5,833 nt of DNA from the IMG/VR virus record IMGVR_UViG_3300027933_000048, positions 1-5,833 of that record, one strand, 5' to 3'. Below, piece after piece: positions 1 through 5,833 of this stretch; the stretch's first letter is position 1, and each line of letters begins with the position of its first letter. The notes under the pieces were generated by a model. That model was not told the DNA's origin. It saw only the letters and a program-made list of their open reading frames with translations, and did not search any database. The position numbers and the translations under genes are program-made.

Positions 1-11
1 TTTAATTAGTT

Positions 12-19
12 GGTGAGGT
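12..19 (+). promoter_or_regulatory. Shine-Dalgarno site for the glycosyltransferase
   Basis: GGTGAGGT ends 4 nt before TTG at 24. Confidence 0.7.
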
Positions 20-23
20 TAAA

Positions 24-1097
24 TTGGAAAAGCCAATTTATTACGTTTATCCTCAGCACCATGATGTTAGTTTCAAATTTGTGGCTAAGGAACATGTAAA
101 AATGTTAAAAGAAAAATATACAGTTTACGAAATACCCGCTTTATCATTTTACCAATTTACTCCTTTCAAATATCCAATTTCAATTATCCACCCATTTTTT
201 TATTCAATGTGGCATTGGACAAATGTTGAATTTTCATTCTTTGAACAATATAGAACTAAAGTTAGTGAAATAATTGGAGTTGAAGTGGCAGACAGTAATA
301 AAATTGCGGAGAAATATATTGAATATGGCAATAATTATGCAGATAAAATAATAGTAAATTCAGAATGGTCAAAAAATGCGTTTAAAAATTCTGGTCTGAA
401 AGTTCCAATTTATAAAGTTGTCCATAATTTTAATGATAGACTATTAGCAAAAGATGAGGAATTAAATGTTGATGAACAAGTGAAATATATTGAAAAAGTC
501 AAAAATGAGAAGAAAATTAAATTAATTTTCATTTCACTTTGGCACTCTGATTTTAGGAAAGGAGGCGATATTTTTCATGCAATTGCTAAGGAAATACAAA
601 AAGAAAGAGACGACATTTATTTTTTAGTTAAAAGCGGAATGCAAAGAACTGATTTCAAAGATATTAAAATGTTTAACTTAACTGGAAATACTGATTTTGA
701 CAATATAATAAAAATGTATAGAATATCCGATTTGTATTTATTACCTTCAAGAGGTGGAAGTTTTGAATTAAACGGTCTTGAGGCTTTTATATCAAAAATT
801 CCAGTAATTGCAACTAAAAACGGGGCATGGGAAGAATATTTTCCTAACGCTTTGAAAGATTTACTAGTTAATAGTTGTGATTTTCCAACAGTTTTACCAG
901 GAAATCCAATTCATATAGGCAAAGGTGTGCAAATGTGTACAAATGAGGCAATAGATAAAATATTAGAAGTTATAGATAAATTAGATGAATATAAGGCAAA
1001 AATTGAGGAGAATTATAATTTCTGGTTAAAAAATTTCGGCTATAATGCAGTTAAAAAACAATTGCTTAATGCTGTAACGCATGAAATGCTGAACTAA
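24..1097 (+). CDS. GT-B fold (GT4-like) glycosyltransferase, rudivirus ORF356-like, 357 aa
   Basis: TTG start at 24 preceded by SD-like GGTGAGGT (12-19). GT4 motifs: ADKIIVNSEW, RKGGD, DLYLLPSRGGSFELNGLEAF..KIPVIAT. Size and sequence style match the rudiviral glycosyltransferase as I recall it. Confidence 0.9.
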   Translation: MEKPIYYVYPQHHDVSFKFVAKEHVKMLKEKYTVYEIPALSFYQFTPFKYPISIIHPFFYSMWHWTNVEFSFFEQYRTKVSEIIGVEVADSNKIAEKYIEYGNNYADKIIVNSEWSKNAFKNSGLKVPIYKVVHNFNDRLLAKDEELNVDEQVKYIEKVKNEKKIKLIFISLWHSDFRKGGDIFHAIAKEIQKERDDIYFLVKSGMQRTDFKDIKMFNLTGNTDFDNIIKMYRISDLYLLPSRGGSFELNGLEAFISKIPVIATKNGAWEEYFPNALKDLLVNSCDFPTVLPGNPIHIGKGVQMCTNEAIDKILEVIDKLDEYKAKIEENYNFWLKNFGYNAVKKQLLNAVTHEMLN

Positions 1098-1112
1098 GTG
1101 CCAAACACATTA

Positions 1113-1134
1113 GAAAAATCTTAAATTAGTCATA
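1113..1134 (+). promoter_or_regulatory. BRE-TATA-GTC promoter, probably giving a leaderless permease+TGT mRNA
   Basis: GAAAAAT-CTTAAATT(1120-1127)-AGTCATA. The TATA ends 23 nt before ATG 1151. GTC just downstream of TATA is a known rudivirus promoter feature. Confidence 0.7.
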
Positions 1135-1150
1135 AAACTCAGACTGTAAT

Positions 1151-2344
1151 ATGGAATTTAAAAGAAAAAGTTCAGGCATAATAAAAAGTTTTAGCTCATT
1201 AGATATTTTTTCTATAAACCTGCTTTACATGGGAATTTTAAGCGGTATAAGTTACCCGCTTTTTGTTTCAGGTCTGTTAAAATCTGTAAATCTATTATTC
1301 GCAGTTTTAATAGCATCAGCTTTTGAAATTCCGCTTTTAGTAATATATTATATTTTAACTAAAAAAATACCGTTAAATGGCGGAGATTATGCTTATATTC
1401 GCTCAGCATTTTCGCCTAAGTTTTATACCGTTTTTGGAATTTCGTTATGGCTGATTTATGTATTTTCAGCACCAGTTTTATCAAACCTTGTATTGTTAAA
1501 TTTCAATATTCCAATATTCGATAAGTTTTTAATTTCAGAACTATTATTTGGAACTGCGTTACTTAGTGTTAGCAAAAAAACAATTTATGCTTATATTGTT
1601 GACGCTATTGCAATTTTACAAATAATTATTTCACTAGTCTTACCAATTTCAAGTTTCCATTTTCAAATTCAAAATTTTACAATATCGAATAGTTTACTTT
1701 CAGCTTTATTATTTGATTTATCCATGTTTTTGTTTTTAAACGCAATTAGTTACATTGCGGGGGAGATAAAAAACATAAGCAAAAACGCTAAAATCGGATA
1801 TTTTGCAAGTTATTTAGTAGTTACTGTATTAGCAATATTAGACAGTTATTCAAATTTAAATATATTGTTTCTACTATTTCCAATTTGGTATATGAGTTAT
1901 ATTTTTGTCACCTCAATGATACAAAGTCGTTTAGTACAAAATTTAGCAATTGATAGAATTTTACCTGAAAAATTTGCGAAAATAACCCCTAACGCACTTT
2001 TATTAATCTTTGTTGCTGATACAATTGCAAATGTTTTAGAAAATATATTTAATTTTTCAATTTCATTCGGTCTTGACGGTCTATTATTTATTTTCTGGAA
2101 CTTTATAATTGTTAGCCTAGCATTCCTAAAATTAACAAATAAGAAACTAATATTTTCAGTAGCAATATCCAGCTTAATTTTACAAATCTTCCTATTCTTC
2201 TATTTAGGATTACAAAATAACATATTCTATAACTTTGTGATTGAGGGAAATGTAATATATACAATATTAAGGATATTAATAATGCCATTTGTAGGCACAA
2301 TTATCTATCTGTTACGGAGAAAAACTGTAAATGTTGATCATTAA
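1151..2344 (+). CDS. APC-superfamily amino-acid/amine permease-like membrane protein (rudivirus ORF399-like), 397 aa
   Basis: Many hydrophobic segments. APC-type motifs FKRKSSGIIKSFSSLD, IPLNGGDYAYIRSAF, IAGEIKN, SRLVQNLAIDRILP. Confidence 0.85.
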   Translation: MEFKRKSSGIIKSFSSLDIFSINLLYMGILSGISYPLFVSGLLKSVNLLFAVLIASAFEIPLLVIYYILTKKIPLNGGDYAYIRSAFSPKFYTVFGISLWLIYVFSAPVLSNLVLLNFNIPIFDKFLISELLFGTALLSVSKKTIYAYIVDAIAILQIIISLVLPISSFHFQIQNFTISNSLLSALLFDLSMFLFLNAISYIAGEIKNISKNAKIGYFASYLVVTVLAILDSYSNLNILFLLFPIWYMSYIFVTSMIQSRLVQNLAIDRILPEKFAKITPNALLLIFVADTIANVLENIFNFSISFGLDGLLFIFWNFIIVSLAFLKLTNKKLIFSVAISSLILQIFLFFYLGLQNNIFYNFVIEGNVIYTILRILIMPFVGTIIYLLRRKTVNVDH

Positions 2345-3234
2345 TGAAATTAATATTTGGAGTTAATGTTTCAACTAGTTATCTTTTTAAAACCAATTTT
2401 CCAGTTTTAATAAATCAATTGAGATTTAGAAAAAGAAAATGGAGAAATGAAACTTGGATAGATAGCGGTGGCTTTCAAATTATTATGTATAATTTAAAAA
2501 TTTCGCCACACGACATTTTAGCAAAATATAAAAGCTTTAACGCTTATGCCTTCTTTTCACTAGATATACCAAGTATTTTTTCACCGCTTAACAAAAAAAA
2601 TTATGAATATTTTGAGTATTTATATACCAAAATTGAATGGATTGAAAAAATTATACCTGTAATTCACATTTATCCAATTCAAGAATTAGATGAAGCAATT
2701 GATTTTTATAAACAATATAGCTATTATTTTGCAATTGGAGGCTTAATCCCGTCAAGCAAAAAGAAAATTCTAATTTATGCATTTCCGTGGGTATATTATT
2801 TAAGAAGAAGAGTTCCCTATCTGCACGTTTTAGGCATGTCAGGCCCATACTTTTTACAAACTTTTAGTAATGTTGATAGCATTGATACCGGAACTTATAG
2901 CAAAACAGCCGCATTTAGGGAAATATTTTGGTTTAATGGAACTGTAAAATATGTAGGCAAAAGAAGACCAAAAAACATAACCAGAGAAGAAAAAGAAGAA
3001 CTGTTTGAATTTTTGGATAAATGTAATTTCCCATTTGAATATGATTTAAGTAATTTCAAAATTCTGGAGCTTATAAATGCATATATGTTACTGTATAACA
3101 ATTGGAAAATTAAGAATAAGTATACAGAATATGCCAAAAAATTAAGAGGAATGGGAATAGATAGTTTAACAATGGAGTTAATTAAAAACTATAAAATTGC
3201 GGCTGAAATATTATCACAAAAAAGAGAAAAATAG
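2344..3234 (+). CDS. tRNA-guanine transglycosylase-like (TGT/DpdA family) protein, 296 aa
   Basis: Catalytic DSGGFQ motif, plus SLDIP, IPVIH, AIGGL, LHVLG and DSID motifs in TGT order. Start overlaps the permease stop (TAATG, 2342-2346). Confidence 0.88.
   Translation: MKLIFGVNVSTSYLFKTNFPVLINQLRFRKRKWRNETWIDSGGFQIIMYNLKISPHDILAKYKSFNAYAFFSLDIPSIFSPLNKKNYEYFEYLYTKIEWIEKIIPVIHIYPIQELDEAIDFYKQYSYYFAIGGLIPSSKKKILIYAFPWVYYLRRRVPYLHVLGMSGPYFLQTFSNVDSIDTGTYSKTAAFREIFWFNGTVKYVGKRRPKNITREEKEELFEFLDKCNFPFEYDLSNFKILELINAYMLLYNNWKIKNKYTEYAKKLRGMGIDSLTMELIKNYKIAAEILSQKREK
3203..3232. repeat. Cassette-boundary repeat, copy 1 (inside the TGT 3' end)
   Basis: CTGAAATATTATCACAAAAAAGAGAAAAAT, 29/30 identical to 3551-3580. 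Confidence 0.85.
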
Positions 3235-3256
3235 GCGATAAAAAAGGAAATTAGAT

Positions 3257-3487
3257 TTATAAACTCTTATAAATTTCTGATAAAACAAAACAATAAAATT
3301 CTATCTTAGACCTTATATCTATTACATCTATATTATCAATATGAAGTTCATTTAATAGTTTCTCTGTTTCTCTCAATTTAATCAATAATTCAAATATATT
3401 ATCAATAGCCTTTTGTAAATCATTACCTAAATATATTTTGCCGTGACCATAAACTAAATAATATCCATTCTCATCTTTCTCTAACAT
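3257..3487 (-). CDS. Small hypothetical protein, 76 aa
   Basis: ORF with its own TATA-GTC promoter, short GTGA-containing leader and a downstream T-rich tract on the - strand. Confidence 0.75.
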   Translation of the reverse strand: MLEKDENGYYLVYGHGKIYLGNDLQKAIDNIFELLIKLRETEKLLNELHIDNIDVIDIRSKIEFYCFVLSEIYKSL

Positions 3488-3512
3488 AGTTTTTCACAAC
3501 TTCAAATTATCG

Positions 3513-3530
3513 TATGACAAATTTAAGAAT
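3513..3530 (-). promoter_or_regulatory. TATA-GTC promoter of the 76-aa gene
   Basis: The - strand reads ATT-CTTAAATT-TGTCATA, nearly identical to the CTTAAATT-AGTCATA promoter at 1120. Confidence 0.65.
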
Positions 3531-3550
3531 AAGAGATAAAAAACTCATGA

Positions 3551-3595
3551 CTGGAATATTATCACAAAAAAGAGAAAAATTATAGATAAAAAAAA
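3551..3595. repeat. Cassette-boundary repeat, copy 2 (contains - strand TTTTTCT terminator-like tract)
   Basis: CTGGAATATTATCACAAAAAAGAGAAAAATTATAGATAAAAAAAA, immediately after the stop of the 70-aa gene. Confidence 0.85.
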
Positions 3596-3598
3596 TTA

Positions 3599-3811
3599 TT
3601 AAGCCTGAGACCGAGAAGAAAGAGATGAAAATAACTTGTTAGCATATTCGCTATCATAGCCATGGTAATAAAAAATTTTGTCGTTATTGCTAAGGACAAA
3701 AACCCCCCATCTAGGGGGATTGCAGCATGTGCATTTTGCTAAAACTACATTATTTTTAATTTGAATTTGTTGAAAGTTATGGTATTGCACACCTAGGGTT
3801 TGAACCTTCAT
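3599..3811 (-). CDS. Small hypothetical protein, 70 aa (MKVQTLG..., CTCC motif), candidate anti-defense gene
   Basis: The track start 3826 lies upstream of the TSS predicted from the TATA (about 3818). ATG 3811 follows the leader GAGGGAT. Confidence 0.75.
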   Translation of the reverse strand: MKVQTLGVQYHNFQQIQIKNNVVLAKCTCCNPPRWGVFVLSNNDKIFYYHGYDSEYANKLFSSLSSRSQA

Positions 3812-3828
3812 ATCCCTCAATTGCATAT

Positions 3829-3877
3829 ATGTAAACAGTTATATTTAAAGCTTTCTCTAAGTTTTTACCTTTGTAGT
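3829..3877 (-). promoter_or_regulatory. Strong early-type promoter (upstream element-BRE-TTTAAATA-N10-CAT)
   Basis: ACTACAAAGGTAAAAACTTAGAGAAAGC-TTTAAATA(3849-3842)-N10-CAT. Aligns without gaps to three other promoters in the window. Confidence 0.8.
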
Positions 3878-3900
3878 TTACGTTATTAATGGCCCTAGTT

Positions 3901-3930
3901 AAGTAATATTATTACAAACTTGAGAAAAAT
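3901..3930. repeat. Cassette-boundary repeat, copy 3
   Basis: AAGTAATATTATTACAAACTTGAGAAAAAT aligns without gaps to copies 1 and 2. Confidence 0.7.
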
Positions 3931-4010
3931 AGACAATAAAAATAGATGAAAATAGAAAACTAAAACATAAAATTATAAAAAGAAAAATAAAAGATAAAAA
4001 AAGAATAAAA
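3931..4010 (-). terminator. T-rich terminator region after the HTH gene
   Basis: Multiple oligo-T runs on the - strand directly after the stop at 4011. Confidence 0.55.
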
Positions 4011-4178
4011 TTACCAACAATCTTCCATGTATTTCTTGGCTTTTCTTTCAGATATCCCTAAAAATTGGGATATCTCGCTCACTGAGTAGCCCTCTCGGGC
4101 CAACTCGTGAGCTATTGAAATCATATCGTCTTCTGATTCAACCATGTATCTTACACCTCTTACACTTATGCTTTTCAT
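4011..4178 (-). CDS. 55-aa helix-turn-helix DNA-binding protein, SIRV gp1/ORF56a-like (Aca8-like)
   Basis: MKSISVRGVRYMVESEDDMISIAHELAREGYSVSEISQFLGISERKAKKYMEDCW has a classic HTH (GYSVSEISQFLGISERKAKKY). ATG 4178 follows GGGGATAAGAAG. The track's longer N-terminus runs through the promoter. Confidence 0.85.
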   Translation of the reverse strand: MKSISVRGVRYMVESEDDMISIAHELAREGYSVSEISQFLGISERKAKKYMEDCW

Positions 4179-4200
4179 CTTCTTATCCCCAATATACCAT

Positions 4201-4249
4201 ATGCACAAACACATATATAAAGTTTTCTGTGCCTTTTTACCTTTATAGC
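4201..4249 (-). promoter_or_regulatory. Strong early-type promoter of the HTH gene
   Basis: GCTATAAAGGTAAAAAGGCACAGAAAAC-TTTATATA(4221-4214)-N10-CAT. Confidence 0.8.
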
Positions 4250-4277
4250 CCACATCATGCTTTCAATAAAAATGCAT

Positions 4278-4439
4278 TTAGTCCCCATATTTCTTTTTTA
4301 ACATTCTAATTAATTCTTCTTCTTCAATTCGTTTCATTTCCTGTCTTAATTCCAATAAGAAAAAGACAAATAATAATTCGTAAAAGAGTGCAAGAATAAC
4401 TATAAACCATATTGGACTTAATGGTGCATTTAAATCCAT
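4278..4439 (-). CDS. 53-aa single-pass membrane protein (not in the ORF track)
   Basis: Manual translation: MDLNAPLSPIWFIVILALFYELLFVFFLLELRQEMKRIEEEELIRMLKKKYGD. SD-like GGTGTGA at 4450-4444. Starts 15 nt after the stop of the 170-aa gene. Confidence 0.75.
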   Translation of the reverse strand: MDLNAPLSPIWFIVILALFYELLFVFFLLELRQEMKRIEEEELIRMLKKKYGD

Positions 4440-4454
4440 ATTTTCACACCATAT

Positions 4455-4967
4455 CTATTCTTTGCAATTAAGAATTTCCTCTAGTTTATCAGTAAATCTA
4501 ACTTCTATTTCATCAGAACTCAACAATTGATAAACCCTAACGCTAAGCAATTTAGCAACAACATCATTAAAATCGTTAATAATACATTCCTTAAAATAAT
4601 AAGAATCATTGAGCACATTATTTAAATATATTTCTGCAATTTTCTTTTTCTCGTTTTCAGATAAATTAAATTCAACAGTAATTTCCTTAAATTCATAATC
4701 CATTTGATTTGCTTCTCTATTTAACGAAACTGTAATTTTGGAATTTTCCATAAATGAGATAAGCAATTCTTCTTTTTCATCTTCATCAAAATATTGTAAA
4801 TTCCATCCATCTTTTTCCACAATTTCAGAAATCATTTGAATTATAGTATCTATTACAACATCCCTAAAATTAGTATAACAGTTTTGAATAGCATTATCAA
4901 AATCTAATGATGTAATAATATTTTCATTGAATTTTTCTTCATCCAGCTTATCTAAAACGACTGACAT
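4455..4967 (-). CDS. Acidic hypothetical protein, 170 aa
   Basis: Long ORF with its own TATA-GTC promoter. Hand count gives 38 D/E versus 17 K/R. Confidence 0.85.
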   Translation of the reverse strand: MSVVLDKLDEEKFNENIITSLDFDNAIQNCYTNFRDVVIDTIIQMISEIVEKDGWNLQYFDEDEKEELLISFMENSKITVSLNREANQMDYEFKEITVEFNLSENEKKKIAEIYLNNVLNDSYYFKECIINDFNDVVAKLLSVRVYQLLSSDEIEVRFTDKLEEILNCKE

Positions 4968-4991
4968 ATATCATCATTTTCATTCTTCAAT

Positions 4992-5014
4992 TATGACATA
5001 TTTATGTTTCTCTC
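4992..5014 (-). promoter_or_regulatory. BRE-TATA-GTC promoter of the 170-aa/53-aa operon
   Basis: The - strand reads GAGAGAAA-CATAAATA-TGTCATA. Predicted TSS near 4975. Confidence 0.7.
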
Positions 5015-5028
5015 AGTAAATCTTAGAC

Positions 5029-5070
5029 CTGAATTTTTATTACAAAACTGAGAAAAATTGTAGATAAAAA
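5029..5070. repeat. Cassette-boundary repeat, copy 4
   Basis: CTGAATTTTTATTACAAAACTGAGAAAAATTGTAGATAAAAA. 5048-5067 is identical to 5540-5559 (20 bp). Confidence 0.8.
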
Positions 5071-5139
5071 TAAGTGACATAAAATTAAGAACACAAAAAT
5101 TAAAAAGATAAAAAAATTAACTTAATGGAAATAAAAAAA
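5071..5139 (-). terminator. T-rich terminator region after the 98-aa gene
   Basis: Oligo-T runs on the - strand immediately after the stop at 5140. Confidence 0.55.
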
Positions 5140-5436
5140 TTATTGAATGAAGTGCGTTCGTTCGTAAGAATCCTTAATCCTAAAAAGCATGTCATTGACA
5201 ACACTAGTCAGATTGGCCCACACTGACTTCATTTCCTCACATTGAACTCCATCAACTTCATATTCTACCCGTAGATAATACACACTGCCGCCCCATCCGT
5301 CAGGGCCTAAGAGCAGTTTGGCAGAAACAATTTTAACTTCAGTAGGAAAGTTGTGAATTTTTTGGCTGTATTTTATTACATCTTGCGTTAAATCCTTAAT
5401 GACCTGATATATTTTTTCTTCCTCTTGTTTACTCAC
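5140..5436 (-). CDS. Hypothetical protein, probably 98 aa from GTG 5436 (MSKQEEEK...), candidate anti-defense gene
   Basis: The track ATG 5472 overlaps the TATA box and ATG 5454 precedes the predicted TSS (about 5449). In-frame GTG 5436 follows a perfect SD GAGGTGA (5448-5442). Confidence 0.8.
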   Translation of the reverse strand: MSKQEEEKIYQVIKDLTQDVIKYSQKIHNFPTEVKIVSAKLLLGPDGWGGSVYYLRVEYEVDGVQCEEMKSVWANLTSVVNDMLFRIKDSYERTHFIQ

Positions 5437-5458
5437 CTTCTTCACCTCTAACATACAT

Positions 5459-5507
5459 ATGCATCTCCTCATATATAAAGTTTTCTCTACCTTTGTATTT
5501 TTGCATG
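5459..5507 (-). promoter_or_regulatory. Strong early-type promoter of the 98-aa gene
   Basis: CATGCAAAAATACAAAGGTAGAGAAAAC-TTTATATA(5479-5472)-N10-CAT. Confidence 0.8.
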
Positions 5508-5520
5508 TTTATTGTTGTCA

Positions 5521-5559
5521 TAGTATTATTATATCAACTCTGAGAAAAATTGTAGATAA
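5521..5559. repeat. Cassette-boundary repeat, copy 5
   Basis: TAGTATTATTATATCAACTCTGAGAAAAATTGTAGATAA, sharing an exact 20-mer with copy 4. Confidence 0.75.
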
Positions 5560-5628
5560 TCTTAACTACAATTAGAAATAAAATTAGAATTAAATGGCTT
5601 GGAAGTTTTTCATCACATGGTTCAGCTT
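5543..5628 (-). ncRNA. Candidate small non-coding transcript (about 50-85 nt), or an emptied cassette
   Basis: Lies between an intact promoter and T-rich terminators. Only ATG-TGA and a 7-codon ORF are present. Contains CTGA-ACCAT-GTGATGA. Confidence 0.4.
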
Positions 5629-5638
5629 AAAGATACTA

Positions 5639-5687
5639 ATGTAACTTATGGTATTTAAAGTTTTCTGCATCCTTGTATTTTTCTATC
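5639..5687 (-). promoter_or_regulatory. Strong early-type promoter with no downstream protein gene
   Basis: GATAGAAAAATACAAGGATGCAGAAAAC-TTTAAATA(5659-5652)-N10-CAT, same architecture as the promoters at 3842, 4214 and 5472. Confidence 0.75.
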
Positions 5688-5833
5688 TTAGCACCTTTTT
5701 TATCATCTTATCATTTTATCCTTTAACTGGAAAATATATTTCAAATCGTTTCTTTCCTTTTTCTCCTGCTATATGAAATGCGGAGAAATATATCTGCAAC
5801 AACTACCCTGCAAATTGCAACTATTAACTACTA

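Follow-up and report, generated by a model that had tools for sequence, protein, structure and literature searches.

We analyzed a 5,833-nucleotide (nt) stretch of DNA from IMG/VR virus record IMGVR_UViG_3300027933_000048 (positions 1 to 5,833, hereafter the window), in which five co-oriented copies of a direct repeat, R1, lie among small minus-strand genes. We propose, with a probability of about 0.6, that R1 serves early gene cassettes as a conserved terminator and boundary element specific to viruses, and that it doubles as portable homology for shuffling them. This proposal builds on what we observed of R1: its sequence, placement, orientation, distribution, and virus specificity, and one clean R1-by-R1 insertion or deletion (indel). 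Positions 1 to 3245 are ~80 to 82% identical to the right arm of SIRV9, SIRV10, SIRV8, and SIRV4, which are Sulfolobus islandicus rod-shaped viruses (SIRVs) from Yellowstone. By its sequence, the window represents the right arm of a SIRV-like rudivirus from Yellowstone, with a genome G+C content of ~27%.

Sequence anatomy of R1

A repeat search recovered R1 as a five-copy direct-repeat family with starts at 3203, 3551, 3901, 5029, and 5521 and spacings of 348, 350, 1128, and 492 base pairs (bp). A 31-nt degenerate R1 pattern, with at most three mismatches allowed, found only these five sites in the window, all on the plus strand, with 0.00 expected from 200 dinucleotide shuffles. The 9-mer GAGAAAAAT occurs five times in the window, always within an R1 copy, against an expectation of 0.24. 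Copies 1 and 2 are identical at 29 of 30 positions, and copies 4 and 5 have an exact 20-mer in common.

We read R1 on the gene (minus) strand, aligned it without gaps over ~46 nt, and took column statistics from 71 unique copies belonging to many genomes. The element begins at its 5′ end with a T-run ending in TAT(C/G), followed by four variable bases. The core is A-TTTTT-(C/T)-TCA, then TTT, then a 3′ block of the form ATA.TA.TTC.A. In Sulfolobus, TTTTTYT is a terminator signal, and it is matched by ATTTTTCTC, which is present on the minus strand of all five window copies. TTTTTCT or TTTTTTT is present in all five window copies and in almost all of the 71 unique ones, and the T-run columns are near-invariant. 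Conservation also extends beyond the T-tract, since the 3′ block and two near-invariant C positions (columns 25 and 44, 19 nt apart) are among the most informative columns. A second TTTCT-like signal is found ~20 nt downstream of TTTTTYT. The conserved core measures ~35 nt and the whole element ~45 nt. A preliminary description of the window, made from its sequence, had listed the same five positions and spacings, the same identities between copies, and conservation past the terminator core; all of these hold. It had also named terminator function plus AT bias as an explanation of the conservation that would refute its reading; the shuffles, with no matches, do not support AT bias.

RNA folding of the five window copies gave minimum free energies of -3.6 to -8.7 kcal/mol (37 C; z of about -1) and no common structure. 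The TTATC/GATAA arms of R1 did not covary, and the informative pair was complementary in 31% of the 71 copies. Given the weak, inconsistent folds and the lack of covariation, we reject an RNA hairpin terminator or an attC-like fold, and an Rfam scan of the whole window returned no match at E values up to 1. Three further candidates were set aside. Bent DNA was rejected on the T-tract spacing of ~11 to 13 nt, which is out of helical phase. Likeness to the Sulfolobus CRISPR repeat, judged by eye, came down to an 8-mer in common and was dropped. The published consensus of a Sta1 site, ATNT-N8-A/TNAT, was too loose for a test.

Most R1 copies follow stop codons

Placement statistics were compiled for 95 non-redundant R1 copies, and upstream open reading frames (ORFs) were counted if they were co-oriented and at least 40 amino acids (aa) long. 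Eighty-eight of the 95 copies start no more than 120 nt downstream of a co-oriented stop codon, 27 of them within 15 nt. A co-oriented ORF starts within 130 nt downstream of 74 copies. For 11 copies the co-oriented downstream gene is missing or more than 250 nt away, including window copy 1 and the SIRV9 copy at 30936, both of which abut a convergent queuine tRNA-ribosyltransferase-like (TGT) gene. These 11 copies show that R1 can be conserved without a promoter behind it. The pattern extends beyond the SIRVs: the five copies of AFV9 lie 0 to 8 nt past co-oriented ORF stops, the two copies of ATV lie 8 and 45 nt past them, and each of the two terminal operons of ARV1 is closed by one R1. Where genes converge, two copies can stand back to back, as in AFV9 (7096+/7177-) and in L086 (5191+/5248-).

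R1 also follows the layout of the genome ends. SIRV2 has all 14 of its copies within 5.5 kb of the left end or 5.3 kb of the right end, and 9 of the 10 copies in SIRV9 lie in the terminal arms; orientation follows the neighboring genes, plus in the left arm and minus in the right. The usual order of a SIRV intergenic region is stop codon, T-rich tracts, R1, a variable purine-rich spacer, the B recognition element (BRE) and TATA box, and start codon. R1 stands ~60 to 120 nt upstream of the next start codon, and its distance to the TATA box varies from ~25 to 65 nt. Placement behind stop codons gives R1 the distribution of a 3′-end (terminator-type) element rather than one tied to promoters, and the variable TATA distance agrees with this.

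The array converges with a core gene. Copy 1 overlaps the last ~10 codons of the convergent TGT-like gene on the other strand (protein end ...EILSQKREK; window 3203 to 3234), and this overlap is kept in SIRV9, L007, L012, L016, L021, and L022. At loci L012 and L016, R1 is found at the end of the TGT gene without a co-oriented gene before it.

Single R1 copies also occur elsewhere. Several usarudiviruses have a lone, well-scoring copy mid-genome, outside the terminal arrays: SIRV9 (L002) at 13988 to 14033, L003 at 15035, L068 at 13585, L069 at 12988, and L032 at 2309. The SIRV9 copy comes after a 117-aa gene, and the SRV (L025) copy at 10481 comes after ORF109, near the capsid gene.

Distribution of R1 among viruses and cells

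As the preliminary description had suggested, we scanned other genomes with a profile, and R1 was found in the terminal arms of SIRV1 to SIRV11 as well as in SRV, SBRV1, ARV1, ARV2, the lipothrixvirus AFV9, and ATV. A position weight matrix (PWM) was derived from the five window copies, refined on its matches, and run on rudivirus genomes. It matched 10 sites in SIRV9, 9 in SIRV8, 4 in SIRV4, 14 in the Icelandic SIRV2, 1 in SRV, 2 in SBRV1, and 2 in ARV1. The PWM found no R1 in SMRV1, and a reversed-matrix control had 0 matches in the eight genomes scanned. Exact R1 patterns run over 2.9 million IMG/VR contigs returned 12 and 27 stretches, and all identifiable ones are Sulfolobales viruses or their relatives from hot-spring metagenomes. 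They include SIRV1, SIRV3, SIRV5, SIRV10, SIRV11, ARV2 (nine copies), the betalipothrixvirus AFV9 (five), and the bicaudavirus ATV (two). The ~35-nt core is kept in at least six rudivirus genera from four continents, in a lipothrixvirus, and in a bicaudavirus, and the flanking genes are unrelated.

Cellular genomes gave a different picture. A strict 20-base R1 pattern, also used on IMG/VR, found 28 stretches in 185,579 prokaryotic species (one genome each). Most of these do not reach the PWM threshold and represent chance hits in AT-rich genomes of unrelated organisms. Three others (L044, L055, and L060) are contigs 99.7 to 100% identical to SIRV3. The only good match, and the sole one from the Sulfolobales, is at L043 7787 to 7832, on a contig of Stygiolobus sp. 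CP850M. Since the cellular scan yielded nearly nothing beyond chance matches and SIRV3 contaminants, the extended R1 motif, for which this survey was made, is a property of viruses and not of their hosts.

Two groups of cellular contigs call for comment in their own right. The Stygiolobus copy is directly past a stop codon on a 22.8-kb contig of low coverage, which showed no nucleotide similarity to the rudivirus, AFV9, and ATV sequences tested and may be an integrated or co-assembled mobile element. The SIRV3-like contigs occur in the assemblies of Streptomyces gamaensis CGMCC 4.7304, Paenochrobactrum glaciei JCM 15115, and Planomonospora alba JCM 9373 (31,951 bp and 29% G+C in the last), and they look like contamination or spike-in rather than bacterial DNA.

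Cassette gain, loss, and recombination

The closest relative of the window is locus L007, which is 96.5% identical across positions 1 to 3245. L007 lacks exactly the 348-bp unit between R1 copies 1 and 2, that is, orf76 and its promoter, and carries, where the TGT gene ends, one R1 with the ADG.08-like gene (predicted anti-defense family ADG.08) directly after it. In a three-way alignment this R1 is a hybrid that carries the left flank of window copy 1 and the right flank of copy 2, with the switch inside the repeat. Because of this hybrid, we read the orf76 unit as gained or lost by exchange within R1. The two loci differ at a second point. The aca8 and ADG.08-like genes are 1 nt apart in L007 (an operon; 5130 to 5136) and 185 nt apart in the window (3827 to 4010), where a T-rich spacer, R1 copy 3, and an early promoter of a second repeat family, R2, make up the 185 nt. 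Given this difference in spacing, gain or loss of the regulatory module is independent of the genes.

Other pairs of genomes place junctions at or near R1. The ends of a segment replaced between SIRV9 and SIRV8 lie 4 and 21 nt from R1 copies, the ends of a 765-nt, two-cassette indel between L019 and L020 lie 15 to 31 nt from them, and one insertion between SIRV4 and SIRV5 begins within an R1. In all we examined about nine indels, which are few events with no formal null, and the junctions of several are 0 to 31 nt from R1 copies. The near-identity of the window to known SIRVs stops at the 3′ end of the TGT-like gene, inside copy 1, and homology blocks shared with either arm of other SIRVs end at R1 copies (3245, 3550, 3895 to 3907, and 5084). 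BLAST blocks are expected to stop at R1 in any case because R1 is conserved between otherwise unrelated cassettes.

R1 copies are more similar within a genome than between genomes (0.711 versus 0.644, a difference reached by 0 of 2000 permutations), which fits local duplication or conversion as a possible source. No recombinase domain was found in the window proteins, and none is annotated in SIRV2, SIRV4, SIRV8, SIRV9, SRV, SBRV1, ARV1, or SMRV1, where a Holliday-junction resolvase is the only related enzyme annotated. Taken together, these sequence comparisons suggest that R1 is a substrate of ordinary homologous recombination, one among several kinds of repeat, and not a dedicated site.

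A rearrangement of another kind can be seen in SIRV2 (L005). Within 4916 to 5491, gp09 is the only inverted gene of the left-arm array and lies between co-oriented R1 copies at 4916 and 5446. Its 3′ flank carries, by eye, an apparent degenerate R1 on the opposite strand that has lost the T-run. A cassette may thus have been inserted, or turned around, between the two copies.

Promoters and genes of the window

Two types of promoter follow R1 in the window. R2 (3842, 4214, 5472, and 5652) is a BRE/TATA early promoter whose repeats match the published core consensus GAAATAGAAAGKTTTATATA of early and anti-defense genes (PMC11065993). R1 itself has neither the BRE nor the TATA box (TTTAWATA) of that published anti-defense gene (ADG) regulatory sequence. 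Because this BRE and TATA box are found in R2 and not in R1, R2 is a member of the published early regulatory class of ADGs and R1 is not. The other type is a TTTGTCATA-type motif, a TATA box then GTC, which also occurs upstream of genes in SIRV2 and SIRV9. TATA+GTC is reportedly a virus-specific promoter element. Copies 3 and 5 have R2 behind them, copies 2 and 4 have TATA+GTC, and SIRV2 and SIRV9 are organized alike. SIRV9 gp05 and gp06, homologues of the TATA+GTC-driven genes, are not among the anti-defense genes of the published list.

All genes from position 3257 on are small, encoded on the minus strand, and directed inward from the genome end (Table 1), and each cassette unit has its own promoter (BRE/TATA). 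Modules of R1 and R2 occur in arms of small genes whose content varies between strains. The layout is the array of repeat-bounded promoter-gene-terminator units that the preliminary description had drawn, including a promoter after each of copies 2 to 5. Its statement that every copy lies downstream of a minus-strand unit stands for copies 1 to 4, which follow genes, and not for copy 5, which follows a promoter and ~85 nt without an ORF of more than 7 codons. This "empty" cassette (5567 to 5685) had no Rfam match and no homologue; it may be the remnant of a deleted gene or a small RNA.

Table 1. Features annotated in the window
Feature	Position	Strand	Remarks
Glycosyltransferase	24-1097	+	Predicted gene
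Permease-like membrane protein	1151-2344	+	Predicted gene
TGT-like (queuine tRNA-ribosyltransferase-like) core gene	2344-3234	+	Convergent with array
R1 copy 1	3203-3248	-	8 nt past orf76 stop; no promoter after; PWM score 48
orf76	3257-3487	-	Cassette gene; not in L007
TATA+GTC-class promoter of orf76	3513-3528	-	Sequence
R1 copy 2	3551-3596	-	2 nt past ADG.08-like stop; upstream of orf76 TATA+GTC promoter
ADG.08-family gene	3599-3811	-	Likely start 3811; longest ORF from 3826
R2 early promoter (BRE + TATA) of ADG.08-like gene	3842-3875	-	Repeat family; consensus match
R1 copy 3	3901-3946	-	Past aca8 and T-rich spacer; upstream of R2 early promoter
T-rich spacer (sense strand), several extra T-tracts	3947-4010	-	aca8 stop to R1 copy 3
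aca8, 55-aa winged helix-turn-helix (wHTH) protein	4011-4178	-	Homologue of short form of SIRV2 gp01/gp54
R2 early promoter of aca8	4214-4247	-	Repeat family; PMC11065993
orf53, small membrane-like protein	4278-4439	-	Syntenic with aca8 and orf170
orf170	4455-4967	-	First gene in conserved orf170-orf53-aca8 block
TATA+GTC-class promoter of orf170-orf53	4992-5007	-	Sequence
R1 copy 4	5029-5074	-	Past orf104 and T-rich spacer; upstream of orf170 TATA+GTC promoter
T-rich spacer	5075-5139	-	orf104 stop to R1 copy 4
orf104, orphan cassette gene	5140-5454	-	Start ATG 5454 or GTG 5436
R2 early promoter of orf104	5472-5505	-	Repeat family
R1 copy 5	5521-5566	-	Past "empty" promoter-only unit; upstream of orf104 R2 promoter
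Empty cassette, ~85 nt between R2 promoter and R1 copy 5	5567-5651	-	No ORF of more than 7 codons
R2 early promoter, no gene behind	5652-5685	-	Repeat family

The gene content is in line with the anti-defense character that the preliminary description had assigned to the array. The ADG.08-like gene product is 51% identical to SIRV9 gp02 and matches phrog_27628, and SIRV9 gp02 is listed as belonging to the predicted anti-defense family ADG.08 by Bhoobalan-Chitty et al. (PMC11065993). The aca8 product is 53% identical to the short form of SIRV2 gp01/gp54 (E value, 1e-22) and matches phrog_7067 and helix-turn-helix (HTH) families of Pfam. The orf170-orf53-aca8 block has a 74% match to SIRV9 2018 to 3226; it is common (~74%) to the left arm of SIRV8, SIRV9, and SIRV10 and to the right arm of SIRV4, SIRV5, and SIRV11 and has R1 at both ends. 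Among the loci compared, the sole homologue of orf76 is in L018 and orf104 has none. A perfect G+C-rich hairpin followed by a T-run, resembling a bacterial terminator, lies within the ADG.08-like coding region (window 3701 to 3721, minus strand); it is probably a chance feature because it is absent from L007.

What R1 may do

Under the reading that we favor, R1 would be the conserved 3′ boundary of early transcription units that hold one gene each and lie in the terminal arms of rudiviruses and of certain other viruses of the Sulfolobales. There it would most likely terminate transcription, either by itself or with the aid of a factor. On the gene strand it presents a phased set of T-tracts centered on TTTTTYT and then CA, with the second TTTCT-like signal downstream, and it would stop transcription from a strong early promoter ahead of the next promoter or of a convergent core gene. 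With the promoter that usually follows, whether R2 or TATA+GTC, it would constitute a repeated terminator-promoter intergenic module. Because such modules are direct repeats every few hundred bp and are shared between genomes, general homologous recombination could act on them, as on other repeats, and so remove, add, or exchange cassettes. Placement puts the terminator or boundary role first and makes recombination a consequence of the repeated homology. We infer termination at R1, and the role of the conserved non-T positions, from these sequence patterns. A more ambitious version, which we consider rather unlikely, is that R1 is a dedicated cis-element for a specific host or viral factor, acting in termination, as an insulator, or in boundary marking, and moves with early and anti-defense cassettes between at least three Sulfolobales virus families. 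Together with the early promoter it might then form a mobile cassette, similar to those of T4-type phages, that drives the exchange of anti-defense genes, possibly via R1-to-R1 circles.

Several observations weigh against a terminator that also serves as shared homology. Upstream of seven of the 95 copies, no co-oriented ORF of 40 aa or longer is found within 120 nt; one of the seven is SIRV2 5446, which lies in a divergent intergenic region. In many SIRV intergenic regions, T-tracts that might suffice for termination already precede R1. The near-invariant C positions and the 3′ block go beyond what a simple oligo-T terminator explains, and it is odd that the host makes no use of a signal that would be read purely by RNA polymerase. 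Recombination is also not specific to R1. Between SIRV5 and SIRV7, paralogous gene ends form a 118-nt repeat on both sides of one indel, a second indel lies at a 44-nt promoter repeat adjoining R1, and the SIRV4 gp45 indel has no R1 nearby. Finally, the similarity of R1 copies is linked weakly to either neighboring gene, with no half-specific pattern. A generic host terminator can be discarded since the strict pattern is essentially absent from cellular genomes.

The conserved non-T positions and the absence from hosts keep a protein-binding site as the main rival to the terminator reading. Here R1 would mainly be an operator, an upstream activating element, or an insulator read by a viral or host regulator of early genes, and the T-tract would be incidental or secondary. 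The specific non-T positions (C at columns 25 and 44) are indeed the most conserved, two TTTCT(C)A-like half-sites lie on the same strand ~20 bp apart, and the motif is virus-specific, being essentially absent from the 185,579 cellular genomes. A few copies, SIRV2 5446 among them, are upstream of a promoter without an upstream co-oriented gene, and the 74 copies with an ORF start within 130 nt downstream would suit an upstream site. A regulator, Aca8, has been proposed to act on the conserved regulatory region (PMC11065993), and binding by the HTH protein was an alternative offered in the preliminary description. As a general explanation this is unlikely. R1 is present in ARV1 (2 copies), ARV2 (9), AFV9 (5), and ATV. 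The first three are among the viruses listed as lacking Aca8 (PMC11065993), and a blastp search of the complete ARV1 genome and of stretches of ARV2 and AFV9 recovered no homologue of it. Because such viruses carry R1, Aca8 is not its general reader, and R1 as an Aca8 operator is ruled out as the general explanation; furthermore, purified short Gp1, an Aca8 homologue, bound no DNA in vitro (PMC5537682). For any other protein, a binding site sits poorly with an R1-to-TATA distance that varies over ~25 to 65 nt, with the 11 copies that have no downstream gene, with the AFV9, ATV, and ARV1 copies directly past stop codons, and with the lack of palindrome covariation in the TTATC/GATAA arms. We consider it unlikely that protein binding of this kind is the main role of R1.

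We give very little credence to R1 as a dedicated recombination site, attC-like or another site-specific joint, that serves primarily for cassette capture and exchange. Co-oriented copies do bound cassettes, one indel is an exact unit with a hybrid copy, homology blocks with other SIRVs end at R1, and the element is common to three virus families. On the other hand, no integrase or recombinase was found in the window or is annotated in the rudivirus genomes, R1 has neither a stable fold nor covariation, each cassette has its own promoter, and some junctions lie at promoter repeats, at the ends of paralogous genes, or at a distance from any R1; block ends at R1 are expected from its conservation alone. 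The proposal in the preliminary description that the repeats are recombination joints, with strain breakpoints mapping to them, is thus upheld in part: the L007 crossover is inside R1 and forms one clean R1-by-R1 event, and several other junctions lie within 0 to 31 nt, but one indel uses paralogous gene ends, another a promoter repeat, and one has no R1. Least probable of all is that R1 copies are functionless relics of tandem intergenic duplication and AT bias. Neighboring copies are the most alike (1 with 2, 4 with 5), similarity is higher within than between genomes, and the G+C content is low (~27%). Against this, there are 0 matches in shuffles and 0 in the reversed-profile control of eight genomes. 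Conservation between genera contradicts this reading: no fewer than six genera of rudiviruses, together with a lipothrixvirus and a bicaudavirus, retain the ~35-nt core despite unrelated flanking genes, and strict patterns run over 2.9 million viral contigs match contigs of Sulfolobales viruses in all identifiable cases.

Significance and comparison with known systems

Small orphan genes at the genome ends of archaeal viruses are the main reservoir of anti-CRISPR and anti-defense functions and are hard to delimit and predict. As a 3′ boundary motif, R1 complements the published promoter-based search and can be scanned for in metagenomes; a promoter and an R1 together bracket a cassette and flag those that are empty or degraded. 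R1 also offers a defined and unusually conserved substrate for archaeal termination, in which sequence needs beyond oligo-T are poorly known. The recombination role, if true, would give a concrete account of how anti-defense genes are reshuffled between arms, strains, and virus families.

Part of this organization has been described. Bhoobalan-Chitty et al. in 2024 published the terminal clustering of early and anti-defense genes, their promoter, and Aca8 (PMC11065993). That study analyzed the 100 bp upstream of start codons and reported a BRE/TATA-centered motif that is more alike within than between genomes; its text makes no mention of terminators or recombination. The ADG regulatory sequence concerns the same genomes, terminal arrays, and genes (Aca8 and ADG.08), and R2 is its promoter. 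R1 differs from it in standing ~60 to 120 nt upstream of the start codon and in occurring also where no gene follows and where Aca8 is absent. Because that distance partly overlaps the 100 bp analyzed, some of the published sequence logos (PMC11065993) may take in part of R1, from its 3′ half. Our literature searches on rudivirus terminators and on repeat-mediated shuffling returned nothing relevant. The promoter and the gene arrays are already known, and R1 is far more widespread than the window alone shows. The extended R1 motif, the range of virus families that carry it, and its lack in hosts seem to be undescribed in the literature searched.

One close counterpart is the oligo-T terminator of Sulfolobus, TTTTTYT, which in SSV1 is reported to be closely linked to the next promoter. 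That signal also lies on the sense strand just past genes, needs no hairpin, and has the next transcription start close behind. R1 is distinguished from it as a virus-specific block of ~35 to 45 nt with fixed non-T positions and a second signal ~20 nt on.

Integrons, to which the preliminary description had likened the shuffling, resemble the R1 array in lining up small genes in one orientation, with a repeat at the boundary of every gene, and in their adaptive gene content. The R1 array, in contrast to attC cassettes, has no integrase and no folded imperfect palindrome, its units carry their own promoters, and its junctions also fall outside the repeat. The integron comparison fails on all three defining features.

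A closer parallel is found in bacteriophages. Promoter-early stem-loop (PeSL) elements are terminator/promoter cassettes between small genes in the hyperplastic regions of T4-type phages, where they mediate modular shuffling (PMC2839356, PMC4122927). Like the R1/R2 modules, they are small, conserved composites of terminator and promoter repeated between small, non-essential early genes in hyperplastic regions. Close relatives of T4-type phages differ by indels and replacements at the modules, ascribed to ordinary homologous recombination, and the same may hold for the rudiviruses, in which only some of the indels examined use R1. The PeSL terminator is a stem-loop, whereas R1 is of the archaeal oligo-T type without a stable hairpin. 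The promoters of R1 modules are archaeal BRE/TATA promoters and those of PeSLs are sigma-70 promoters, and a variable purine-rich spacer separates terminator from promoter in the R1 module, whereas a PeSL is one compact unit. Because R1 lacks the stem-loop and the signals are archaeal, we regard the R1/R2 module, by this comparison, as an analogue of the PeSL in Sulfolobales viruses and not as a member of that class.

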